Positions 21,190 through 51,400 of a DNA stretch of 64,000 nucleotides are shown one piece after another. The stretch comes from Vitrella brassicaformis CCMP3155 (taxonomy: Eukaryota; Protista; Chromerida). Made by a program: the position numbers and the translations under genes. Position 1 is the first letter of the stretch. Each line of letters starts with the position of its first letter. The stretch covers positions 1-64,000 of the forward strand of contig CDMY01000249.1 in assembly GCA_001179505.1 (NCBI GenBank), read 5' to 3'. The notes under the pieces are model-generated. The model did no database searches. It was not told the DNA's origin and saw nothing but the letters and a program-made list of their open reading frames with translations.

Positions 21190-21662
21190 CCTTGAGTTCG
21201 ATGCCCTGTCGCTCCTCGAGGTCTTGCAGCTCACGTGCCTTGGCACGCAGCTCTGCCTGGCTCCTCTGCAGTGACAAACGCACACACGCACACAGACACA
21301 CACGTGTGGTGAGCGAGATGGCTGTGTATGTGGTACCATGAGTCCCTTCTTTTCGACGATCCAGAAGTAGTTGATCTTTTCCCGCTCGTTCATGAGCTCG
21401 TTCATGAGCCGCTCCTCACTCTCACACTGAGCCTTCAACAGACTCGCCTGCAGAACGGGCACACATACACACACAGGATGAGAGGCCCTTCCCGGTGCGT
21501 GTCGCCAGTAGTCTGCGTCTCCGTGCGCGGTGTTCCAATCATGGGCCATGCCACCTCGATGAGGAGTTCCTGCTTCATCTTTTCCCCCTCGGCCTCTTGT
21601 GCGGCCTGCATGGGGTCCACCGCCTCCTTCTTCTTCCCACCGCCCTTCTTCTTGGGAGCCAT
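19297..21662 (-). CDS. GAS8: Growth arrest-specific 8 / dynein regulatory complex subunit 4
   Basis: MAPKKKGGGKKK start; EERLMNELMNEREKINYFWIVEKK, LFKQRVKHLRY, RQDFERKAKDLQQKFQLRM, IEEKKNQHI, IKHYYTDITSSNIDLIKRLK, KSGLQ|NLLLERKLEAL, AMVKAYEARLAEFGI, all characteristic of DRC4. Confidence 0.93.
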
Positions 21663-21777
21663 CTCGACTGCTTCCGTCCTTGCGTCGAGTCAAAAGTTGC
21701 TCACTGGCATGCAGTCTTTGGCCCCCAGCCCCCAGGCGTTACAGTTGGATGGCGTCTTGTTGTTTAGGCTGCCCGGG

Positions 21778-24418
21778 ATGAGGTCTGGCGCTGTCGGGCT
21801 TATCTTTGCTGCTGTCTTGCAGCTGGCGAGGAGTCAACAACGGATAGAAGCGCCTCAGCCCTCTCTGAATGACATCATCCCCGGCAACACCACCGCTCTC
21901 AGCGTCCAGGGCCTCAAGCGCCTCACCAACTTCCTCCCTGTCGACGATCGGGTCTTCTCGCGCGCGGCAGAGTCGGGCGTCGTCTACATCCACCCGCTGC
22001 CCGACACGGAGGACATCTCACCCAACACGACCATCGCCATCTCTTTCGACAGGCCATTGGCTGCCGAGGCAGTGAAGGGCAATGTGCGGGTGAGGGGCAG
22101 CAAAACGGGCGGCCATGGAGGGACGCTCGATCTCGGCGATGACAAGAAGACCATCGTATTCGAGAGCCGCCGGCCGTTCGCACTTGGCGAGGCTGTGACG
22201 GTGACGGTTGACCCCTTCCAATCGTCACGGCAGGGGCACAGAAGCAACGACATCTACATTGAGGGCTACCAGTGGTCATTCAAGATCGCCGAGGAGATGC
22301 CGGCCGAGCTGACTGAGCGCTTCCCTTTCATCCCGTATGGCGCTCGCGAGGACAAGGACGTCTACGCCCCGCCAGCCCCCGCCCCCGCCCATCCCGACGA
22401 TGGGCGGTCGGAACCACACGGCACACGGGGCATCTTCAAGACTGTCGGCACCGTCCCGGAGATCATGGTCAGAGTGCCCAGGATGGCCAACAGCACCAGC
22501 AGGGGCTACATCTTCACCGAGACCATTGCGGATCCCTCCAACACGATCAGGAGCTCGCTGATGATAATCGACGACAGTGGCCAGCCGGTGTGGGTCAAGA
22601 GGCTGCCGGCTAACCACGGCTGGCGGGGCTGGAGCACGAGAGACCTGAAGGCGCATCCTGCTGGTCTGTTGAGCTTCCACTCACCGCAGAGGGAGGGCTT
22701 TGTGGTGCTGGACAAGACCTACACCGAACTGCGTGTCATCAAAGCAAGAGGGTGAGTGGTGGATTGGACACTGCAGTACGTGCACACACGCACACGGACC
22801 TTATGCCTTGTCATATCCTGTCGTGTCATGCAGATTCCGTACGAATGATCACGATGTGCAGATCCGCGACGACGGCCGCGTGTTGGTCATGGGGCACGCT
22901 CTTCGCCACGGGGTCATAGGGATGATTGTGCAGGAGCACGACTCTCAAGGGCGGGTCGTATTCCAGTGGTCTTCATGGGACCACCTGTGAGCAAGGAAAA
23001 GGCACACACAGCTCAGCTGCCTGTTCATCTCGTGCGGTGTGTGGCGTGTCAGGCCGAATCAGTTTGACGACACCCGTGGGATGCGGACGCCCAACGACTT
23101 CTGGGACCACCTCCATCCCAACGCATGCTCGTGGGCACCCGACGGCGTGAGCACAACCGCACCACACACCAACAAACCCACTCTCTGTTGCTATGTTTTT
23201 CCGTCGCTCAGGACATCGTCATTTCACTGCGGCACACGTCGCAGGTACAGAGACTATGTCATACAGCACAGCACAGGTCGGCCGTACCCCCTGTCTTTCT
23301 CTGTGTGCCCTCCCATCAGGTGGTGAAGATCAACCGCAGGAATGGCAAAGTCCGCTGGCTGCTGGGCGGCCGCTCAAGCCACTTCACCTTCGCCAATGAC
23401 CACGGCTTTACCTACCAGCACGACGCACGGATGCCCAGCCCACACACACTGACTCTATTTGACAACGGCAATTTTCACCGTCCTGAGTTGAGTCGGGCGG
23501 TCGAGTATCGCATCGACGAGGCGAGGATGGTGGCCACCAGGGTGTGGGAGTACAGGAATGACCAGCGCACATTCGGCGCCGCCACGGGCAACGTCCAGGT
23601 GAGCGGAGAAAATGGCTGGCTGCAAAGAAGACGGGCAATCACGTGCTGTTCAATGGTGTCTGTGCTCAGACGCTGGCGAACGGCAACAAGGTCGTATCAT
23701 GGGTGAGGTAACATATATACCTGACATACACCGCACAAGAGGGCCGTCACTTTTGCATTTTTCTTATTCTAGGGGGGATTCTTTGAGTCGTTCCCTGATG
23801 ACGCCCCTTTCTACACGGAGGTCACACGTGGAGGGCAGAAGGTCCTCGAGATGAGTTTCGTCAACAAGAGATTCCAGGTGTGTACTTGTGTTGTTGTTGT
23901 GCAACGCCCATGCCCCTCTGTGTGTGTTGTGTGTGTGTGTGTGTGTGTGTGTGGGCCTCTTGTGCAGCTGCAGGCTTACCGATCGTATCGGTTCCACTGG
24001 GAGGGTGCGCGGCCAAAGACCCCACCCCAGCTGAGACTCACACAGGCCGAAGACAGGCTGTTCTACAGCTGGAACGGAGACACAACCACACGCACATGGA
24101 GGGTCGGTCAGCCTCAAAACAGACACCCACACCCAACGACGCCGGTCATGTGTTGTGGCGCAGGTGATAGCTAATGGTGCAGTTATCGACGTCCACGACA
24201 AGACGCTGTTCGAGCACTCGACCGTCCTGCAGAACGGCAGCCGGGCAGGCCAGTGCATCACCTATCAGGTGGTAGCGCTGGACGCTGCCGGCCAGCGGAT
24301 CAGGGCGTCCAATCTCGTGAAGTCGAGTGCATGCGGCAAGGGCAGCCAACCAGGCGGGAAGGGCAAGGGGCGGCGGGGGCAAGGGCGACAGGAGACAGCC
24401 GAGGGGAAAGGCACGTAG
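21778..24418 (+). CDS. Secreted arylsulfotransferase (ASST-family beta-propeller) with an N-terminal Ig-like domain
   Basis: Signal peptide MRSGAVGLIFAAVLQLARS. Ig-like ISPNTTIAISFDRPL..TIVFESRRPFALGEAVTVTV. ASST motifs NDHDVQI, FQWSSWDHL, DHLHPNA, ISLRH, YQHDAR, TLFDNGN, SRAVEYRID, GNVQ|TLANGNKVVSWG, AYRSYRFHWEG. Split by canonical introns. Confidence 0.88.
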
Positions 24419-34903: not shown

Positions 34904-35376
34904 GACGTTCTCGCGGGAGGGGGGAGGAAGGGGGAGAGGGGAAACAAGGCGATCTCAATTGGGGGCCATTGGGGCCCTGAGGGGGGGGAGGGGGGGGGTA
35001 TTCAATCTATTGTCAACGGTCCATTTGTCTGATCATCATGACTCTGATGTACATACACACTCAGACATACAGGCGCATATTGACATTCATGCTAAGATGG
35101 ATGCAGGGTGCTCGTGCTATAACTGTGCAAGCTTGCCATCAGGTCTGACAGGCATTTGAGTGAGTGATGCAGTGCAATGCAGTGCAGGCAGCGCAATTCA
35201 CACGCCACGACGCCATAGTGGTGTGTAGTGGACACTCAAGCTTAAGTGCATCCATCGATTCGCAACCCTCATTTAACGGCTTAAGGTGTAGTAGCACTCA
35301 GGACCACACCAGACCACCGTGCTGTCTGCCCGCACGCCCGCATCAGCCTGTACGCTCCAGCTCTGTCGTTAAATCC

Positions 35377-38104
35377 TCATGGCCCCTCCACTTTGCCAAA
35401 TCTATCGGCGTCTTCCCCTTTACACACACACACACATACACACACACATACAGCGAGAGAAATTGCTTCGCCATGGCTCTGTGTGTGTATTCTTACGCGT
35501 CTGTTGGTTTTCCTAAGCAGTTCTCTGCCGCCCTCCTTATTGATCATACACATCACCGCCTCCCTATTTCCTTGCAGGCAAGCCAGGTGCATAGGAGTGT
35601 TGCCGAGCTGCATGCAGTGGAAACGGAGGGAAGAGAGTGACAACAGAGACCACTTCTCTCCTGTCTCCGCTGACCGTGTTGGTTTTCTGGAGCAGCGTCA
35701 CTCCTCCTTCCTTCAACAGATATTCTATCGCCTCCACACGATTGCCGCTGGCAGACATGTGGAGGGGGGTCAGGCCGTATTGGTTGAAGCTTTCGAGTGC
35801 CATCGGGGTGCCGGTCCAGTCGACCAGCTGTTGCAACACACTCACATGACCACCGAACGCAGCGTCGTGGAAAATTGTCAGACCCTGAAGAGAGACAGCG
35901 GCAAGATTTGTGTAGGAGACATGATTTGTGCATGAGACGACTATACGTTGGATTCCAGTGAGAGGATAAAGTCGACGCCTTTTCGCTCGACGATGGCCCT
36001 GAGCACCGCCAGCTGTCCCTCCTCCGCAGCAACGCCGACAATCGTGCGACCATACTAAATGCAAGAGACACAGCAGGCACGCGAAAGCTGCATGAACGAT
36101 ACACTTGTCTGTCTGCCTGTCTGTCATTTGAAAACAACCCTGACCTTGTCTTGGATGGTGAGAAAGCGGTCTCCCCCAATGTCTAGCAGCAGATTGACTA
36201 CCGAGACATGCCCTCGTTTCGCTGCAAGATGTATGGGGGTGGGCTCTTCTTGAACCTTCGTCCGTTTCTCAATGAGGTGCTTCCCTCCTCGCTTGACAGT
36301 CTCCTTGACCAACATCTCCTGGCCGTTCTGGGTGCTGTAGTGCAGGGGCGTGAGGCCGTTATCGTCAGTCATTTCGAGACACTCAGGCCCCTCTTCGTTG
36401 GTGATGAATTTGATCAACGCCTTCAGGTCACCCTCGGCACAAAACTGGGAAAAGTCCAAAACGTGAAGGAAGAATGACATGGCCTGAGTCGTAAACTGTC
36501 GGCAGTGTGGGCACCTCAAAGATTCGGTCCTGAGACAAGAGACAAGAGACACGAGTCATAAGACATTTTGCCGACCATGGTTCATCTTCTGCCGACCTTT
36601 TCACTTGCTGTCGTCTTTGCATCTCGATGCGCGCTTTTGCCATCAACACGGGCGATCTGAAAGAGGATATGAAAGGAGATACACGAAACATGATACACAA
36701 ACAGGGGGAAAACACGAGAAGCATATGATTTATGCCCTTGCCTTTCCGCTTGCTCTTCGATCCGTGTCTCGACCTGTACCTCGATCATCGATCGCTGTGG
36801 TATGGCCTGAAAGCAAAACGAGACAAGATTTTGCTGAACTATTGTCTCTCCTGCCAATGCATACTGTCAACGCTGATTGGTTCGCTGGCTTCCCACACGT
36901 AAGCATTCCGCTGCCGCTCCTCCTTCATGACGACCGTGCCGTCGTCCACACACATGAGATGGTCCGACAGGCCCACGCACGACAGAGTCGACAGCTTGCT
37001 GTACGTAGCACTGATCCTCCGCCCCGGGTGTGCTTTTCCGTGCTGATTTCGTCGTCCTTGGACGCCGAGGGCTTACAGCAAGCAGAGCAAGCAGAGAAAG
37101 ACTTGCACAAGTCGAATGGCTTGCCCATGTGGGCAGGCATCATCTCCCAGTGCTCATTCTCCGCCTCCTTCTTTTTGTCAGTCTTGTCGATCCCGATGGT
37201 CGGCTCGTCAGTAGGAATACCAAGTACGAGTACCTTCTTACTCTCGTGCACTCGAAGCGTCAGACGCGGGAAGGCCACTGGCACAATGCGAAAGGTGTCC
37301 CTGGAGCAGAGGGAGTCTTCGTACTTCCTCCAAAGTTGTGAAGTTTTGAATTCAAGACGGCTCGAAAGCCAACTCACTCTGCGACCAGTAGCCGGTTCCA
37401 AGACCACATACACTTCATCAGCAACTCCAGGCTCGGCTGTGAGAAAGCAATCTGTGTAGACGTTGCGGAGCCGAAATGGCTTGGCGTCTCTGTTCTTTTG
37501 CCGACGAATGTATTCATTTCGGGCGATAAATGGTGGGTTGGCCTTGACGAGCACAATGCCACTCTCGTCCTGATACCAATCAGGGTGAATCATCCGGTTG
37601 ACGACCTGGTGTTTGCTGTCCTCGATGAAGATTGAGAGGCGGCATGGGCTGATGGTTTCGAGGTGGGTGTCTTCATTGACGTCAAGCAGCTGCCAGTCCT
37701 CCGCAGCTCAAAAGTATCCGAATTCAATCTCTATGTCCTTCTCTTCGTCTTGTTCGTGACTGAATTAACGAGAATCTGATGCATGCAACCGACGGGCATC
37801 TCTCTCTCCAACGATTCATACCTGATCTCTTTCTGGGGCTCCACCTCCAAGCCAGCATCGACGGGACCAACTCCCACATTGAGCCCCACTCTGAAGGCTC
37901 CCCTGTCATACTCCTTCTCAGCTCTCTTGAGCTGCTTCTTAACCTTCTGTATATCGCCCACAGGTACAAGCTTCACCTGACAGAAGGCACGCCCACTGTC
38001 CCAGCGGAACGGTTACCCCCGGCTTCGCTTACCGATGCGGCGCTGTTGGTCTTGTTGAGGATGCGGAGCGCGGATTTTCTGGCGATTGGCGTGTCCGAAG
38101 CCAT
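35377..38104 (-). pseudogene. Paralogue 1: unrecognised N-terminal domain + beta-trefoil-like region + ankyrin repeats, disrupted
   Basis: MASDTPIARKSALRILNKTNSAAS|VKLVP... aligns exon by exon with 45860-48372. TGA at 37708-37710 where paralogue 2 has Arg, plus a frameshift near 37025. Ankyrin exons GLTPLHYS, PTPIHLAAKRGH, GLTPLHMSA, GNTPMHLAC. Confidence 0.75.
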
Positions 38105-38643
38105 TTCGATTTCTCCTTGCAATTGGGGGCCAGTGGGGGCGCAACAGTCTCGAGCCCGAACGCGTTTGAACAACTGCCTGTGGCCAGACCTCCTGCTGTT
38201 ATCGATAGGGTAAGGGAATGAACTGAGGCAGCGAACAATGATGTGTTCCGCTGTTATGTTGACGCGTGATTCGGATGCAGGCAAGGGGGAGAGTTCGAAG
38301 GGTGGCATCGAATGGGGGATTCGGATGCAGGCAAGGGGCGGCATCGAAGGGTGGTTCTCCGGCTTTTTGTAGCTTTCTCCACGGCTTTCTTTGGGGTTCA
38401 ATGTGAGGCGACGGTGGACCAACGGATGTAAGTAACACAGCTTCACAGAGGCATCATGTGCCTGCCTGTCTGTCTGTCTGTCTGTGTGCAGGTGTGGCTG
38501 TCTGGCTGAGTGGCCGATGGCTTCGCCGCGCTGATGGTGACGATGCGGCCGTCTAGTGGCGCGATGGCCCTCTCCCCACCGCTGCTGAGTGCTGCTCGTC
38601 TCTCTCTCTCTGTGTGTGTGTGTGTGTGGATCCATTATCACTG

Positions 38644-43884: not shown

Positions 43885-45859
43885 GACCGAGGTTTCAGCC
43901 ATCAATTCATTCACGCGACTCCCTTGTCTGACCTGCAATACATGCGGTTTTCGTCAGAGCAGCATTGGAACAGCAGCAGAGAGTGAGAGCGAGAGAGAGC
44001 GCGATGGAATAGATCTGGAGAGTGACAATGGGATCGTCTCAATGAGACGGAGCCCCCATTTTGCATTTCGTCACGGTGTGAGAAGGGAGCATGCAGAGAG
44101 GTGGGCAGGTGGGAGGACTTGGTGAGAGTTTTTCTCAGTCAGAGATTTGATGTTTGCACAGAGAGAGCGTGAGCTGCGTAGACGGGGGCGATGACAAGCT
44201 ATCGTCTTCCCGTACGCACCGACGTGGTGCGCCACGGCATGGCGTAGCGCATTCACCACTGTGTAGGAGCGCAAAAGAGAGCACTTGGGGATATGGCGGG
44301 CTGGTTGGGTCACTGGGTGGATGGATTGAGAAGGGTGGGGCTGTTGATGCCATTGGCGTGGATGCTCTCGGCTCTGGTGCATCTGAGAGCCGAGAGAGAG
44401 AGATCAATTCATCGTCAGATCACAGCACCGAGAGAGGCGAGGCGGTTTTAACCAGCAGCACCACTCGATGACATTCCACATGAGTGTCCAGAACACCATA
44501 CTCGTCTCCTCTGGCAGACAAACAACACCGAAGAGGTCAGCCAACACACACATACGCAAACAGACAGATCTCATCGCACATGTCTGTTGTTTTTGGGCGT
44601 GTGTCTGTCTGGCAGTACTTGGATGCGTGTCTGATAAATAGTCTTGGCTGCCGGGATGGCGGGTGTTTCTCTTGGCTCTCGGGACGCCGAGATGGAGGGA
44701 GACTGGAGAGCTGGTGGGAACTAACGGGAGGCGGCCCAGTGGCACGACCAGTGGCAGGCCTTCAAGCACATGTCAGGGCGGGTCTTCAAGCACATGTCAA
44801 CACTGTCTCTCACTCACACCACCTGTTATAGGCTGCCCATCCTCATGACAACAAGCACGACACGGAGAGGAGCCACAATTTGTCTGTCACTTGTGGGTGT
44901 GTCTTGTCTGTTCCATAGATTTTTCTTCTTTTTGTCACGCGCCGATTGCCGGGGGGTGTTATATAGTGTGTCGGTTGTGAAGCCTTTGTCGGAGACATGT
45001 TGACTCTAGATCTCCCGTGTGTGCACACATACAGACGTATACAGATCGGTGGATGTATGGATGGATCGTGTGAGTGTAAGTGCCGTTTTGCCTAGCTACA
45101 TGAAAGGAAAGATGCCGACCACACAAATGTGAGCTCACTTTGCCATTACTTAAACAATCATTGAGAGAGAGGTCTGTCTTGCCAATGGTGTCGGCGGCAT
45201 CTCTGTCTGTCTCTTGCTATTGAATGGGTCTGATAACTGTCTGACAGACGCCAAAGGAAAGGCGCAATTGTCAGCTCACTCTATGCATGTCCGCCATGGC
45301 AGACACACTCCACCACACAGTCACCGAGAGAGAGAGAGAGGGAGAGAGAGGGAGTTATGGCCGGCAGGTGTCTATGTCTCTCTGTGTCTGTGTCTGAATG
45401 CTTTTTGGGTGTGTCGCTGCATTAGGCTCTGAATCGATCACGAGACAGCTCTCTGGGTGCTGTGCTTCACTCGCCCGTCGTCTCGTCTTGGGTCTAAAGC
45501 AATTATCTGTTCGATATGTCAGCAATGTTACTGTGATGTCCGCCCGCCCGCTCATCTCATGTGCGTCTGGGCCGCACCCACACAGACGCAAGAATGCTTC
45601 TCTCAGCATTGCAATATGCTGCCCAGCTGGAATGCTCAACTGCTCAACTGCTTACGCAGAAGGCTGGGGAGACACAAATTTCACGCCAATTGACGCCTTT
45701 TATACCCCTTGGTCGATTGGCAGGCTTGATTACGGTCTACTAGCAGACACCTGAAACTAAGGCGGGCGTCAGCCTATTTGACAGCATAATGTCAAGTAGA
45801 ACTCACAACGCTATGTCTGTCTCTATTAGACCATACGCTCCAACTCTGTCGCTAGATCC

Positions 45860-48372
45860 TCATGGCCCCTCTCCCTCGCCAAATCGATCGGCGTCTCTCC
45901 CTACACACACACACACACAGAGAGAGACGGGGAGAGAAATTGCTTCGCCGTGGCTCTGTGTCGGCCCACTTACGTGATTGTTGGTTCGCTTGAGGAGCTC
46001 GCGGCCGCCTTGCTTGTTGACCATGCACATGACCGCCTCCCTGTGCCGCTGCATACCCGCCATGTGCATGGGGGTGTTGCCAAACGGGACGCAGAGGGAT
46101 AAAGAGGAAACAGGGATTACGGAAAGTATGTCTCCGGTGTCTTTGCTCACCGTGTTGATTGTCTGGAGCAGCGTCACTCCTCCTTCCTTCAGCAGATACT
46201 CCATCGCCTCCACACGATTGCCAATTGCAGCCATGTGAAGGGGTGTCAAGCCATGCTGGTCGGGGATTTTGAGGGGTTCGGGGCTGCCGTTCCACTCCAC
46301 CAACTGCCGCAACACGTCCACGTGGCCACCGAAGGCAGCGTTGTGAAATATCGTCCGGCACTACAGACACAGATCAGGCGTGTAGCCCTGCTCACACATG
46401 ATGTGTTGTTACATAGGACTCGAGCGAGAGGATGGAGTCGAATTCTTTTCGCTTGACGATGGCCGTGAGCACTTTCAGCTGTCCTTCCTCCGCAGCAACG
46501 CCGGCAATTGTGCGGCCGTACTGAATCAAGAGACACAGACAGACACTGTGTGTGTGCGTCTGTTTGTCTGTTTGTCTGTTTGTTGGAGACACTGACCTTG
46601 TCTTTGATGGTCAAAAGATGCTCTTCCCCCGTGCCCAGCAACAGATTGACCACCGACACATGCCCTCTTTTCGCCGCTAGGTGAATCGGGGTGGGCTCTT
46701 CTCGAACCTTCGTCCGTTTCTCAATCAGATGTGTTCCTCCTTGCTCGACAATCTCCTTGACCAGCTTCTCCCGGCCATTCTGGGCGCTGTAGTGCAAGGG
46801 CGTGAAGCCGTCATCGTCAGCCTCTTCGAGACGCTCGCGGCCCTCTTTTCGATGAAGTTGATCAACGCCTTCAGGTCACCCTCGGCACACGCTTCAAAGA
46901 TGGTTTTGTTCTGGAACGAGAGACAAGAGACATGAAGAGGACTTCAAAGCATTCACGGCAGGGACGGACGCTCCATTCCCTGCTTGACCTCTCCGCTTCC
47001 TGTCGTGTCTGCGTCCTGAGCCGCCCCTTTCCGATCGACTGAGAGCGTTTGGCCTGAGAACAGAAGCGAGACACTATTCAACACAGGCACGACACGTATG
47101 CGAACACACACTAATATACACACCACACGTCTCCTCTCCAGCCCATGAGTACCTTCCATCATGATTGGTTCACCAGCTTGCCACAGGTGGGGCGTCCAGT
47201 CACAACATCCGATCTTCTTCATGACGACAGTGTTTCCCACCGCACACATCAGATGCTCCTTCAGGCCCTTACACGATAATGTCGACGGCTTCGTGTCGTA
47301 CGTGGTGCTGGTGCTGACCCTTCGTTCCGCCTTATGCACAAGCTCGTCGTGCTCCATCGAGACCGAAGGCTTGCAGCATGCGTCAGGGATGAAACGATAC
47401 AAATCGCATGGCTCGTCGGGAGGCAGCATCTCCCATTGCTCATCTTCGGCCTCCTCCTTCTTGTCGTCGGTCGTGCCGGTCTGTTCCCCCGGCGTGTCCA
47501 GCACCAATTTATTGCTCTTGTAGACTCGAAGAGTCTTATCCGGAAACGCCATTGGCACAAGACGACGGGCCACGTCGCTGGTGCAGAAAGAGTCTTTCTT
47601 CCACCTCCACAGCTGGGATGGATCCACAGATTCGCCTTCGTTGCGGCCCGTCCTTTCTTTCAAAAAAATGAAAGTGCGACCGACACCGCTCTCAGCGGTA
47701 AGTACCATGTCACTCCTCCCGGTACGAATGTCGTACATGTGCAGCCGGAAGAATGCAGCCTTGATATTCTCCTGCTGGCGAAGATACTGCTTGTAGGGCA
47801 TGAAGAGCGGATTCGCTTTGACGAGTACTATGCCGTTCTCGTCTTTCAGCAAGCCAGGGTGGATCATGCGGTCGACGACCTGGTGTTTGCTGTCCTCGAT
47901 GAAGATGGAGATGTAGCAGGGGCTGATGGTGTCCTGGGTCGTCTCTGCGCCAGGGACCAGCTCGTGCCATTCCTTTGCCAAGCGGAAGAAGCCAAATTCA
48001 ATTTCTATCTCCTTCTCCTCTTCTTTCTTTTTCCTGCATTGCGTGAGAGAGGAGAAAGTGTCATAATGTCTCCCTCTGCATTGTTCATACCGGGTCTCCC
48101 ATTCGATCGTTGGCTTTGCGCCGACCCCAACGCCGCTGATTTCCCCGCTAAGCTCCAGTCCGATGGCTGTTCTATTGTACTTGCTCTCTTCCTTCTTCAG
48201 CTGCTTCCGAACTTTCTTAGGTGGAGCCGCCGGCACAAGCATCACCTGACATAAGTACATGCTGACGTGCTTTCTCACTTCACGAAACCTGTCCGCTTAC
48301 CCATGCAGGGCTGTTGGCCTTGTTCAGGATCCGGAGAGCAAAGTTTCTCGCCGTTGGCGTTTCTGAGGCCAT
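45860..48372 (-). CDS. Paralogue 2: unrecognised N-terminal domain with an amphipathic beta-hairpin + beta-trefoil-like region + ankyrin repeats
   Basis: MASETPTARNFALRILNKANSPAW|VMLVPAAPPKKV..IGLELSGEISGVGVGAKPTIEWETR|..YISIFIEDSK; SQLWRW and EQWEM (QxW-like). Ankyrin exons TIFEACAEGDL, FTPLHYSAQNG, PTPIHLAAKRGH, GLTPLHMAA, GNTPMHMA. One base missing at the T4 run 46846-46849. Confidence 0.78.
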
Positions 48373-48494
48373 CTCCAAGGCTAGCGCCCGTCTTCTGGGG
48401 GCTGCCGGGGGCCAAGGGCGCGAGCTTGCAAAGGATGCTGTGTTCTGGTGCATCGATGTGTGATTCGGATGCAGGTAAGGGGCGGCACCGAAGG

Positions 48495-51400
48495 ATGATT
48501 CTGCGGCTTTTTGTAGCTTTCTCCCTTTTGGTCGGGGCCCAATGTGAGGCGACGGTGGACCAATGGACGGATGACGGCGCGAACAACTGCGAAGGGACAG
48601 GATGGCTGCCGCTTGCGGAGTACACATTTGGGAGCAACGAAGAAGGCCTGGGTTGGCGAATGTATGTATGTACGCATGCATAAGATGCAAAGAGCCGGCA
48701 ATCATTGCGTGTGTTACTTTGATGTCTGCAGGAAAGGCGGGTTTAGGGGGTCACGATTCGAGACGGGAAGGCGGTCATCTCCACAGCGAAGAATGCCTAC
48801 TTTGACCTTCAGCAGGGCATTGCCAATATGCCCTCATCCACCCGGGCAGCCCTGTCCGCGACAATGGACCTCTCACAGCTCAATCTACCAAATGTGCCGT
48901 CGGAAGACAGGTTCTCGGGCACCGACGGGGTCAGCAAGAACGGTTTCGAGCTTGTCAACATGAAGGGGGAAAGCAATGGACGCGTTGCAAGCCTGGTCGT
49001 GTACAGACATGACAGCACGCTGAAGGGCATGCTCACTTATACGAGTGAGTCTGGGGAGGTGAGAAGCAGCGAAAATGCCTTCAGCCTACAGGATGATGGC
49101 TCGACGCACGAGTACGTTATCGGCTACACGCTGACCAAGGGGACGGGTGGCGAAGGAGGGGTGTTCGTGTGCGAGGACGGCAATCTATTGTTTGAGAAGA
49201 CGCTCCAGGAGCTCATGTTGACAGACACAGACGTGACCAATGTTCGCGTCGGGTAGGTACTTTGCAGAGACAGAGACACATATAATAATGGTGGATTCAT
49301 GGTTTCGTGGTGTGTCTCTGCGTGTGAAATATGTGTCTGTAGGTACGTCACTTGGGGAGCCAACGTGCAAGGACAACTCAGCCTTGATCGCATTTCGATG
49401 TACGTGCCATCCCTCCCTGACGTGTACGTCAACGCACAGACGGGAGCAGACACAAACGAGGGCACTCAAGACAGCCCCCTCGCATCAATAGTCCGAGCAG
49501 CAGAGGTGCGACTGACACAAATGAGAAAACAGAGACGCCTGACGCCATGTATTGTCCCGCGTGTGTCTCATCGATTTCAGATAGCACGGCAGGGCACGAC
49601 CGTCCACATTGCCAAGCGAGTGTATCGAGGAGCATTGAAGCTGAAAGGCAATGGCGAACCCGGCAAGCCCATCCGATTTGTTGGCGAGGAAACCAGGGAC
49701 ACAGCCATTGTCGGGTCGATCCGTGCTGAGTGGGTGCAGCATGGGCGTTGTATGGGGCAACGTGCAATTGTGTTGTCACACAGACAGTTGTTCGTCTCTC
49801 ATCTGTCCTTTTTGCAGTGCGCTCGAGTGGACCTCAGATCAAGCAAGCATCTTCAAAGCTGATGTGACAAAGTTGAAGGACGGAGGAAATTATGTCGGCA
49901 CGTGGAGCCTCAGTCGAGCCCCGAGGTGGCTCTGTGAGACCAAGACAGCTGGCGTCTGCAGCAAGAAGTATCATGTCGCTCGGAGTCCTAACTTTCGTCT
50001 GCCGGACCCTCCAGATGAATACAAATACTTGCAGGCATGCAGCCGCATCAACGAATACAAAGGCTCTGGTTTTGTGGGAGGGGGAGGACGTTTTGCTGTT
50101 TTGTGTCATTCGCAGCATTGGTACGTGGCCGACGGAGGTAGTAGGGTCCCAAGCTGCGATCCATCCGCTGAGGAGGGCCCTGACCGATTTTGTGACGAGA
50201 ATACGTGGTCATTTAACACTATGACCGATGTCGATACGTTTCCCGAGAGCGGAGATCCTCAGCCAAAGGGGAACCTCAAGACGCTACCCGATTTGGTTGG
50301 TGCCATCATAATTGCGGTACGTCAAGTGACTCCCCGCCGAACAACCAGCTGGACAGTCACTTCTGACCCTTTGTTGCCTTTGCTTGTTCGATCATGCAGT
50401 CTAGCGGCAGAAATGGCTTTTGGAACATGCAAGCAGAAGTCAAGACACACGACAAGGAAGCCGGAAAAATCACCATCAGTAAAACATTTACCACCTGTCC
50501 CTCTGTCTCACAAACGGAGAGTCGCTTTTCTTGTTCTGCAGACACCCAAGAAGCAAATTTCTACTGCAGAGACCCAACGTACGCGAAATACATCAAGCAA
50601 TTCGGCTCCCAATATCTGATTCCGTGCGAATAGCTTTCCGGGATTCCGTGCATTTGCCCACTACTATGTTGCAAATAAAATGGCCTTTCTCGACAGCCCT
50701 GGCGAAGTGAGCGTACAACACGGGAAAGAAGTAGGATTTTCATTGTGTCTCCCTCTGTGTGCGGCACTGTGTGCTTGTAGTATTATTCTGACGAGAGTAC
50801 AGGCCTACTGTATGTGTGGAAGCCAGACGACGTCGAATGGAGCGATATAGAGATCGTGGGGGACGCCAGCGATCAGAAGATTGCCCTCGACCTGACCGAC
50901 AAGAGCTTTGTCGAGCTGTCGGGACTCACCTTCTCTTTTTTCGAGGAGATGCTAAAGGAAACCTACCCCACCAGCAGATCCTCTGAGCACATCAATGTCA
51001 ACAACTGCCCCTTCCACAGCGCCGTGAATGGTGTCTGGCTGGTTCGACGGCTGGATCGGTCGAAGCCACACAAGAAGACGCGGTTCTGGAGCTTCACTGC
51101 CAACGAATTTTTTCGACTCCGTTCTTCACTGAGGGCAACAAAAACGAACGAGGCCGCGACCCCGTGAACGGTAAGAGAGACTCGACTCTATGAAGGGTGT
51201 GTGTTGTTTGGTTTGTGCTGTCGTTGTGCAGGCGAAGCTAGTGTGCGCGACTTGTACTTTAGCGGCAACAGATTTCACCACTCCAGCTTCCCCTACGAGT
51301 GAGTGCTCAAATAAGGGCGTGAGTGCCCGTGTGTGTCATCTTGGCAAATGAATGTGTGTGTGCAGGTACCCGCTGTATAAGGTGAATACAGACGCATTGC

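Follow-up and report, generated by a model that had tools for sequence, protein, structure and literature searches.

Here we describe a family of modular proteins from the alga Vitrella brassicaformis CCMP3155, one gene of which, called copy 2 below, lies on the minus strand of a 64,000-nucleotide (nt) stretch of genomic DNA on contig C249 (the window). The copy 2 gene joins three parts: an N-terminal, beta-rich module of about 150 amino acids (aa), called the N-module here, a central domain predicted to fold as a beta-trefoil, and an array of ankyrin repeats. We propose, at about even odds, that this Vitrella-restricted family, in which the N-module is combined with the trefoil and, in intact members, with the ankyrins, consists of probable cytosolic proteins of a binding or adaptor type. 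The original prediction on this DNA had suggested a ligand-gated pore former of undescribed architecture. The architecture did prove to be undescribed, with no relatives outside Vitrella and no paper mentioning it.

The distribution of the family was addressed in the genome and in the protein databases, using the database model of the copy 2 protein (P0001), exon-wise references or unaltered translations as queries. In the genome (72.7 Mb, 1064 contigs) the trefoil occurs at no fewer than 16 loci, spread over 14 contigs; at most of these it is preceded by the N-module and followed by ankyrin exons. An exhaustive HMMER search with aa 1-415 of P0001 against 1.84 billion representative proteins gave nine matches, namely the family proteins P0002 to P0005, one spurious repeat protein and four short fragments, of which three derive from copy 1, the second gene of the window; no family relative beyond Vitrella was among them. 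The three-part architecture likewise found no relative outside Vitrella in this search. Two word-index searches returned the same small set, in which the matches bearing a source name were all from V. brassicaformis and the fourth was an MMETSP transcript. In the literature we found neither a paper describing a Vitrella trefoil-ankyrin protein nor one linking Vitrella with gasdermin. By these sequence searches, the family is restricted to Vitrella and is turning over by gain and loss of copies. It had originally been described as two paralogues; the second one is indeed present in the window, but the family has the many loci given above and copy 1 is broken.

The members of the family differ in their domain make-up. 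P0003 (C541:6130-9891) has an N-module, a trefoil, an acidic D/E/K-rich linker and a second trefoil, and it lacks ankyrins. P0004, a transcript-derived open reading frame (ORF) of 369 aa that is marked complete, consists of the N-module and one trefoil only. The modules therefore recombine within the family. The ratio of non-synonymous to synonymous substitution rates (dN/dS) was 0.12-0.32 for pairs of the P0005 subfamily, in the hairpin-bearing first exon as well as in the trefoil exon, and 0.27-0.37 for the large exon of copy 2 against its paralogues, while one short pair gave 0.66; one ankyrin pair in the 'ancestral frame' is left out of these figures. Judged by these ratios, the proteins of the family are under purifying selection, though single copies decay.

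The copy 2 gene (45826-48372) has ten exons and is annotated as an unnamed protein of 633 aa, which we aligned without a mismatch onto the minus strand, with the ATG at 48372 and the stop just past 45829. Every annotated exon junction follows the GT-AG rule, and intron lengths range from 52 to 102 nt. The gene coordinates and the peptides quoted in the original prediction were found in place, with AIGLELSGEISG starting at 48167, AFRVGLNVGVG at 37898 and YISIFIED at aa 116. Evidence for transcription came from Logan contigs of four public runs, aligned to 45800-48400; the record does not give the library type. Contig joints reading CT..AC on the plus strand, which corresponds to GT..AG for copy 2, were present in three of the four runs. 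Seven introns (1, 2, 3, 4, 6, 7 and 8) are spliced exactly as annotated, including an in-frame intron of 57 nt (48033-48089) that immediately follows the hairpin and is truly spliced out. Copy 2 is therefore transcribed and spliced. As had been predicted, the protein has no signal peptide; neither a hydrophobic N-terminal signal nor a transmembrane helix was found (best 19-residue Kyte-Doolittle mean 1.04), which makes a cytosolic location of the family proteins plausible.

At the annotated intron 5, no splice joint was seen in the transcript contigs that carry the neighbouring joints. Record 15 of run X6 (46597-46887) and record 4 of run X1 (46597-46837) run contiguously through these 53 nt, yet both are spliced at the neighbouring introns. 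Three-frame translation showed that the 53 nt and the bases before them, read in a frame other than that of exon 5, code for the first ankyrin repeat, which is conserved (LEEADDDGFTPLHYSAQNGREK..., see P0002 for comparison). Upstream of ATCGAAAAGAGGGCC the frame reads INFIEKRAAS, and the ancestral ankyrin sequence resumes downstream of it in a different frame. Transcript and DNA contigs match the genome without gaps at this site. The first ankyrin repeat contains a real 1-nt frameshift, and the annotated intron 5 is probably a construct of the annotation by which this shift is bridged. As transcribed, with the 53 nt retained, the ORF ends after about 452 codons at a TGA (46725-46727). With the 53 nt retained and the frame shifted by 1 nt, the mRNA seen therefore codes for a protein of about 452 aa that comprises the N-module and the trefoil and is devoid of ankyrins. 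The site represents either a definite error of the gene model or a recent lesion on the way to a pseudogene.

Some further joints of the transcript contigs were observed within copy 2. At intron 8 (46049-46150), whose annotated span ends just past in-frame sequence coding for the start of an ankyrin repeat (GNTPMHMAGMQ), run X1 has the 102-nt joint, and three runs have a joint of 69 nt (46081/46151), whose ends are non-canonical and which comes with base differences at 46028 and 46048. The 69-nt joint is probably the product of a near-identical paralogous exon. Another joint (46889/47855) skips 965 nt, has non-canonical CG..GC ends and is matched by loose contig ends at these positions in several runs; it probably reflects chimeric contigs between paralogues.

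The ankyrin array of copy 2 was recognised by Pfam in P0001 (Ank_2, E 7.6e-24; Ank, E 2.1e-18). It is split over short exons and lies out of frame in the transcripts seen. The original prediction had counted about five repeats; the repeats are real, but there are about seven of them at the DNA level, and copy 2 does not keep them in frame.

The central domain (aa 168-375) is by its predicted fold a beta-trefoil, with the twelve strands and three lobes of that architecture. The AF2 model, computed from a family alignment of 18 rows, has a mean predicted local distance difference test (pLDDT) score of 73, with about 90 in the core. In a Foldseek search against the PDB all top matches of this model were beta-trefoils (E from 2e-4; template modelling (TM) score by target up to 0.78), among them the MTX holotoxin, the Vibrio vulnificus hemolysin lectin, CBM42, HA33, CCL2, SSA and ThreeFoil. 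Comparison by VIA gave a Z of 16.7 to HA33, with a root mean square deviation (rmsd) of 2.3 Å over 132 residues and a coverage of model residues 29-236, and a Z of 15.3 to the V. vulnificus hemolysin lectin (rmsd 2.0-2.1). A Z of about 15 was reached by many other structures, designed Symfoils among them. The neighbours of the domain in the ESM Atlas belong to the RicinB and AbfB families.

At the sequence level, each of the three lobes has an invariant Trp (W218, W276 and W360), and the motif of the third lobe reads HLW or ALW across the family. The trefoil of P0001 had no match in Pfam, NCBIfam or PDB sequences. RicinB_lectin_2 was matched by one of the 18 family members (E 0.078), and a PDB profile search with the family alignment A1 returned Cereblon at E 3.2. 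In a motif-level comparison made by eye, LVLTA, TLRV or HLMC stands at what we take to be the position of the sugar-binding Asp. The domain had originally been called a beta-trefoil lectin. The trefoil fold was borne out (Z up to 16.7), and a lectin function is putative, as P0001 matched neither lectin profile (Ricin_B_lectin, RicinB_lectin_2) and the canonical Gln of QxW is found in lobe 1 only. Between lobes 2 and 3 the model contains a loop of low confidence, which carries a conserved Cys-Cys pair (ACCKPS), with C296 invariant in alignment A1. In the paralogue C297 (L013:1887-3347) a far richer Cys cluster (CSICTFCCCACCKHC) was observed in the equivalent loop.

The N-module begins with two short alternating strands (aa 11-29; ...LRILNK..., V-LVP), followed by a charged helix (aa 33-50), a Gly-rich hairpin and a K/E-rich stretch (aa 77-84), after which three to four further strands are found (IEIEFGFFRL, YISIFIED, GIVLV). 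When the insert of about 50 residues, formed by the helix, the hairpin and the K/E stretch, is set aside, a core of about 100 aa is left. That this domain of about 150 aa contains a conserved, Gly-rich, alternating hairpin with charged flanks had been predicted and was confirmed by column statistics over 12 paralogues. The alternation is strict, with hydrophobic residues at aa 52, 54, 56, 58 and 60, a Gly-Gly turn at 61-62 and again hydrophobic residues at aa 63, 65, 67 and 69, and with Gly, Glu, Ser or Thr between them. Positions 56, 60 and 63 are hydrophobic in 100% of the paralogues, and positions 61, 62 and 66 are Gly in 75-83%. In copy 2 and in its C374 relative the alternation extends to W73 (about 11 + 11 residues), compared with 9 + 7 residues in the rest of the family.

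We searched for relatives of the N-module with 16 sequences, and no match was found in Pfam, NCBIfam, PADLOC or PDB sequences at E <=10. A PDB profile search with the family alignment A3 returned only GroEL and eL32 at E >1, which reflects composition and not homology. The AF2 model of the module has a pLDDT of 47, with about 32 in the hairpin, and its strands are short. Compared by VIA with 48,161 chains, this model (pLDDT 47) reached a Z of at most 4.5, to the extracellular domain of PepT1, TssJ, VHL, MSP, PapD and Fn3-type sandwiches, which are generic Ig-like folds; the rows for actinoporin and aegerolysin, at a Z of 3.0, are at noise level. Foldseek with the same model (pLDDT 47) found nothing below E 0.4, and neither aerolysin nor lysenin nor gasdermin was among its top structural matches. 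In the ESM Atlas, aa 1-160 of P0001 (model pLDDT 0.55) had assorted beta-sandwiches as structural neighbours (TM score 0.35-0.45) and no usable match by features, and the best score for aa 1-150 of P0005, 0.78, is at chance level. Modelling of a homo-oligomer of four N-modules gave a score of 0.00, with the fold of the single chain itself uncertain, and so speaks neither for binding nor against it. The proposed relationship to the aerolysin, ETX-MTX2, lysenin, monalysin or gasdermin folds thus found no backing, with no profile match at E <=10 and no fold match for a model of pLDDT 47. We also considered the N-module as a degenerate second trefoil, and this was rejected, since hhalign of alignment A3 against A4 aligned only trivially overlapping residues.

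Copy 1 has 40-50% protein identity to copy 2 (approximate values). Its conserved IEIEFG-F-RLAEDW strand is interrupted by an in-frame TGA at 37708-37710 (FGYF*AAEDW), its reading frame changes near 37024, and it is present in the databases as three fragments only (P0006, P0007 and P0009). Copy 1 is a pseudogene. The duplicated DNA spans about 45.83-48.57 kb and 35.35-38.43 kb. Over the ankyrin part the two copies are 75% identical in 1.1 kb of DNA, introns included, and over the part coding for the N-module and the trefoil the identity is lower (64-73%). Upstream of the genes, in promoter or 5' untranslated regions, about 120 nt (48450-48567 and 38305-38426) are 84% identical, which exceeds the identity of the coding N-module; this conserved stretch may have a regulatory role or have arisen by gene conversion. 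The Pfam scan of the ORFs neighbouring copy 2 yielded nothing relevant. Elsewhere in the window, a 475-aa ORF on the plus strand (21328-22752) contains a bacterial Ig-like domain (Big_5, E 3.9e-6) and has no relation to the copy 2 gene. The coordinates of the features are listed in the table.

Table. Positions of the features of copy 2 and of its paralogue in the window.
Feature	Position	Strand	Basis
Copy 2, exons 1-5	48372-48298, 48242-48090, 48032-47151, 47051-46989, 46910-46833	-	exact mapping of P0001
Copy 2, exons 6-10	46779-46597, 46520-46413, 46360-46151, 46048-45974, 45900-45829, then stop codon	-	exact mapping of P0001
N-terminal orphan module, aa 1-150	47811-48372	-	family alignment A3
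Gly-rich amphipathic hairpin, aa 50-75, end of exon 2	48093-48170	-	column statistics, 12 paralogues
Beta-trefoil domain (predicted fold), aa 168-375; span includes intron 3 (47052-47150)	47037-47759	-	AF2, Foldseek, VIA, ESM Atlas
Lobe motifs of the trefoil	SQLW aa 215-218, EQW aa 274-276, HLW aa 358-360	-	alignment A1
Low-confidence loop between trefoil lobes 2 and 3, aa 294-321 (~28 residues)	47298-47381	-	model residues 155-182, pLDDT <50
Ankyrin-repeat array, ~7 repeats at DNA level, exons 5-10	45829-46910	-	Pfam Ank, Ank_2, Ank_3, Ank_4, Ank_5
Reading-frame change site in first ankyrin repeat, ATCGAAAAGAGGGCC	46839-46853	-	three-frame translation compared with intact paralogue P0002
Annotated 53-nt 'intron 5'	46780-46832	-	retained in transcript contigs
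Copy 1, paralogue with same architecture and exon layout	35343-38104	-	tblastn with P0002

In the model that we favour, the orphan N-module, with its inserted charged helix, hairpin and K/E stretch, would be the family-specific output or membrane-facing part. The trefoil, joined by the ankyrins in intact members, would serve as a binding module for a ligand or a partner, and the Cys-Cys loop could tether the protein to the membrane once acylated. An ordinary binding or adaptor role is more likely than pore formation. Several points weigh against this view, however. A plain adaptor role does not account for the alternation of the hairpin, its Gly-Gly turn, its charged flanks and the purifying selection acting on it. 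The binding role of the trefoil and the ankyrins is putative, and the Cys-Cys loop may be a candidate site of S-acylation (palmitoylation) for membrane anchoring. That the N-module would not form pores is read from an absence of evidence, obtained with a model of pLDDT 47. Moreover, a minor mRNA of copy 2 from which the 53 nt are spliced out may exist, since contigs lose rare isoforms and the library type is unrecorded.

A doubtful but serious alternative is that the locus is functionless, both copies in the window being in decay and the transcripts being leftover expression of a gene that is turning into a pseudogene. The premature TGA and the frame change of copy 1 fit such a decay, as does the frameshift of copy 2, by which every ankyrin repeat is lost from the reading frame of the observed transcripts. 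In addition, the beginning of an ankyrin repeat is cut out with the annotated intron 8, and other loci of the family carry many stops (six in C743). However, copy 2 has retained an intact ORF for the N-module and the trefoil, which is transcribed and spliced and whose dN/dS against the paralogues (0.27-0.37) argues for constraint. The ankyrin-less product may even be a working form, as the complete P0004 also has only these two domains. We regard it as unlikely that the N-module forms pores as a compact beta-hairpin module, with a trefoil that targets a glycan or lipid and ankyrins that gate the pore, in a cell-autonomous defence or cell-death effector with the module order of lysenin. The conserved hairpin is suggestive of pore formation, but such a feature is not confined to pore formers. 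Ordinary beta-sandwiches often contain amphipathic hairpins. Its family-wide conservation as 9 + 7 residues (about 11 + 11 in copy 2) with a Gly-Gly turn and charged flanks, and the purifying selection on it, are in line with the pore model, and in the AF2 model it is unstructured, as a segment that refolds could be. On the other hand, strands of 7-9 residues, as in most paralogues, are generally short for spanning a bilayer, and no similarity in sequence or fold to any pore-former family was detected by hidden Markov model, PDB-sequence and fold searches. The structures closest to the trefoil include those of the pore-forming toxins 4owk and 8bad, but this likeness is one of general fold, and designed Symfoil proteins score equally high. 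The turnover of family copies, typical of immune-type genes, also fits the effector model. Known beta-pore-forming modules (aerolysin-type, lysenin, gasdermin) exceed the core of the N-module, with its short predicted strands, in size, which counts against the pore model by an argument from size only. With a fold as poorly modelled as that of the N-module, the idea of a pore former appears neither supported nor refuted.

A bolder version of the membrane idea, which we consider improbable, is that the N-module is a new and unusually small membrane-inserting beta-hairpin domain, which together with a targeting trefoil and regulatory ankyrins makes up a family of death or defence effectors invented in chromerids. 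Finally, the Gly-rich segment (consensus G-G-V-E-I-G) could be a short signalling motif of an amyloid or RHIM-like type, serving as a template for assembly and not as a membrane hairpin. It resembles what we take to be the RHIM core, (I/V)Q(I/V)G; a core of hydrophobic-E-hydrophobic-G after the G-G is kept in most paralogues, and the segment lies in a region that is predicted to be unstructured. However, it has a Glu in place of the Gln that defines a RHIM, and it is located between strands inside a folded module and not in a terminal tail. The searches for family loci and the HMMER search, which were not aimed at this idea, found no partner protein with the same motif. We regard a RHIM-like role as highly improbable.

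Overall, our data draw attention to a family that pairs a predicted beta-trefoil and ankyrins with a domain for which 1.84 billion proteins contain no detectable relative. V. brassicaformis is a coral-associated alga, and chromerids are photosynthetic relatives of the apicomplexan parasites, whose lineage-specific gene families are almost unexplored. If the N-module does act on membranes, it would represent a new type of effector in the cell-autonomous immunity or cell death of protists. If it does not, the family would still illustrate well how purifying selection acts on an orphan domain. The annotation of copy 2, in addition, is a concrete case of an error in which an invented intron hides a frameshift.

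Among known systems, the ricin-B and AbfB-type trefoils (HA33, MTX lectin domains, CBM42, the V. vulnificus hemolysin lectin and the fungal CCL2/SSA/PSL) share the predicted fold of the Vitrella domain, with a Z of 15-16.7 and an rmsd of 2.0-2.8 Å over 122-138 residues, and like them the Vitrella domain has three lobes that each end in a conserved Trp. It is only about 10-17% identical to them and, in P0001, without a Pfam trefoil match; the Vitrella protein also differs by the Cys-Cys loop between lobes 2 and 3 and by the lack of a signal peptide. As for gasdermins, a likeness in the first 30 residues (...ARNFALRILNK...LVP) and in Gly-rich hairpins had led us to consider this family. It was dropped, as none of the 16 members had a match in Pfam or PADLOC at E <=10. 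The gasdermin N-domain, moreover, has about 240 aa and two hairpins, whereas the Vitrella N-module has about 150 aa and one hairpin. Lysenin and the trefoil-bearing beta-pore-forming toxins (Tpp/Toxin_10 proteins such as Tpp80Aa1, LSL, CEL-III and the Vibrio cytolysins) likewise carry a beta-rich module with an alternating hairpin beside a trefoil. In lysenin the pore-forming module precedes the trefoil, which is the order found in Vitrella, and the modules are of similar size. The trefoils of Tpp80Aa1 (8bad) and of the V. vulnificus hemolysin (4owk) are among the structural matches of the Vitrella trefoil, whereas the N-module (AF2 pLDDT 47) has no detectable similarity in sequence or fold to the pore-forming modules of these toxins. 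The Vitrella family is further set apart from them by the much smaller core of its N-module, by its C-terminal ankyrin array and by its confinement to a single alga.

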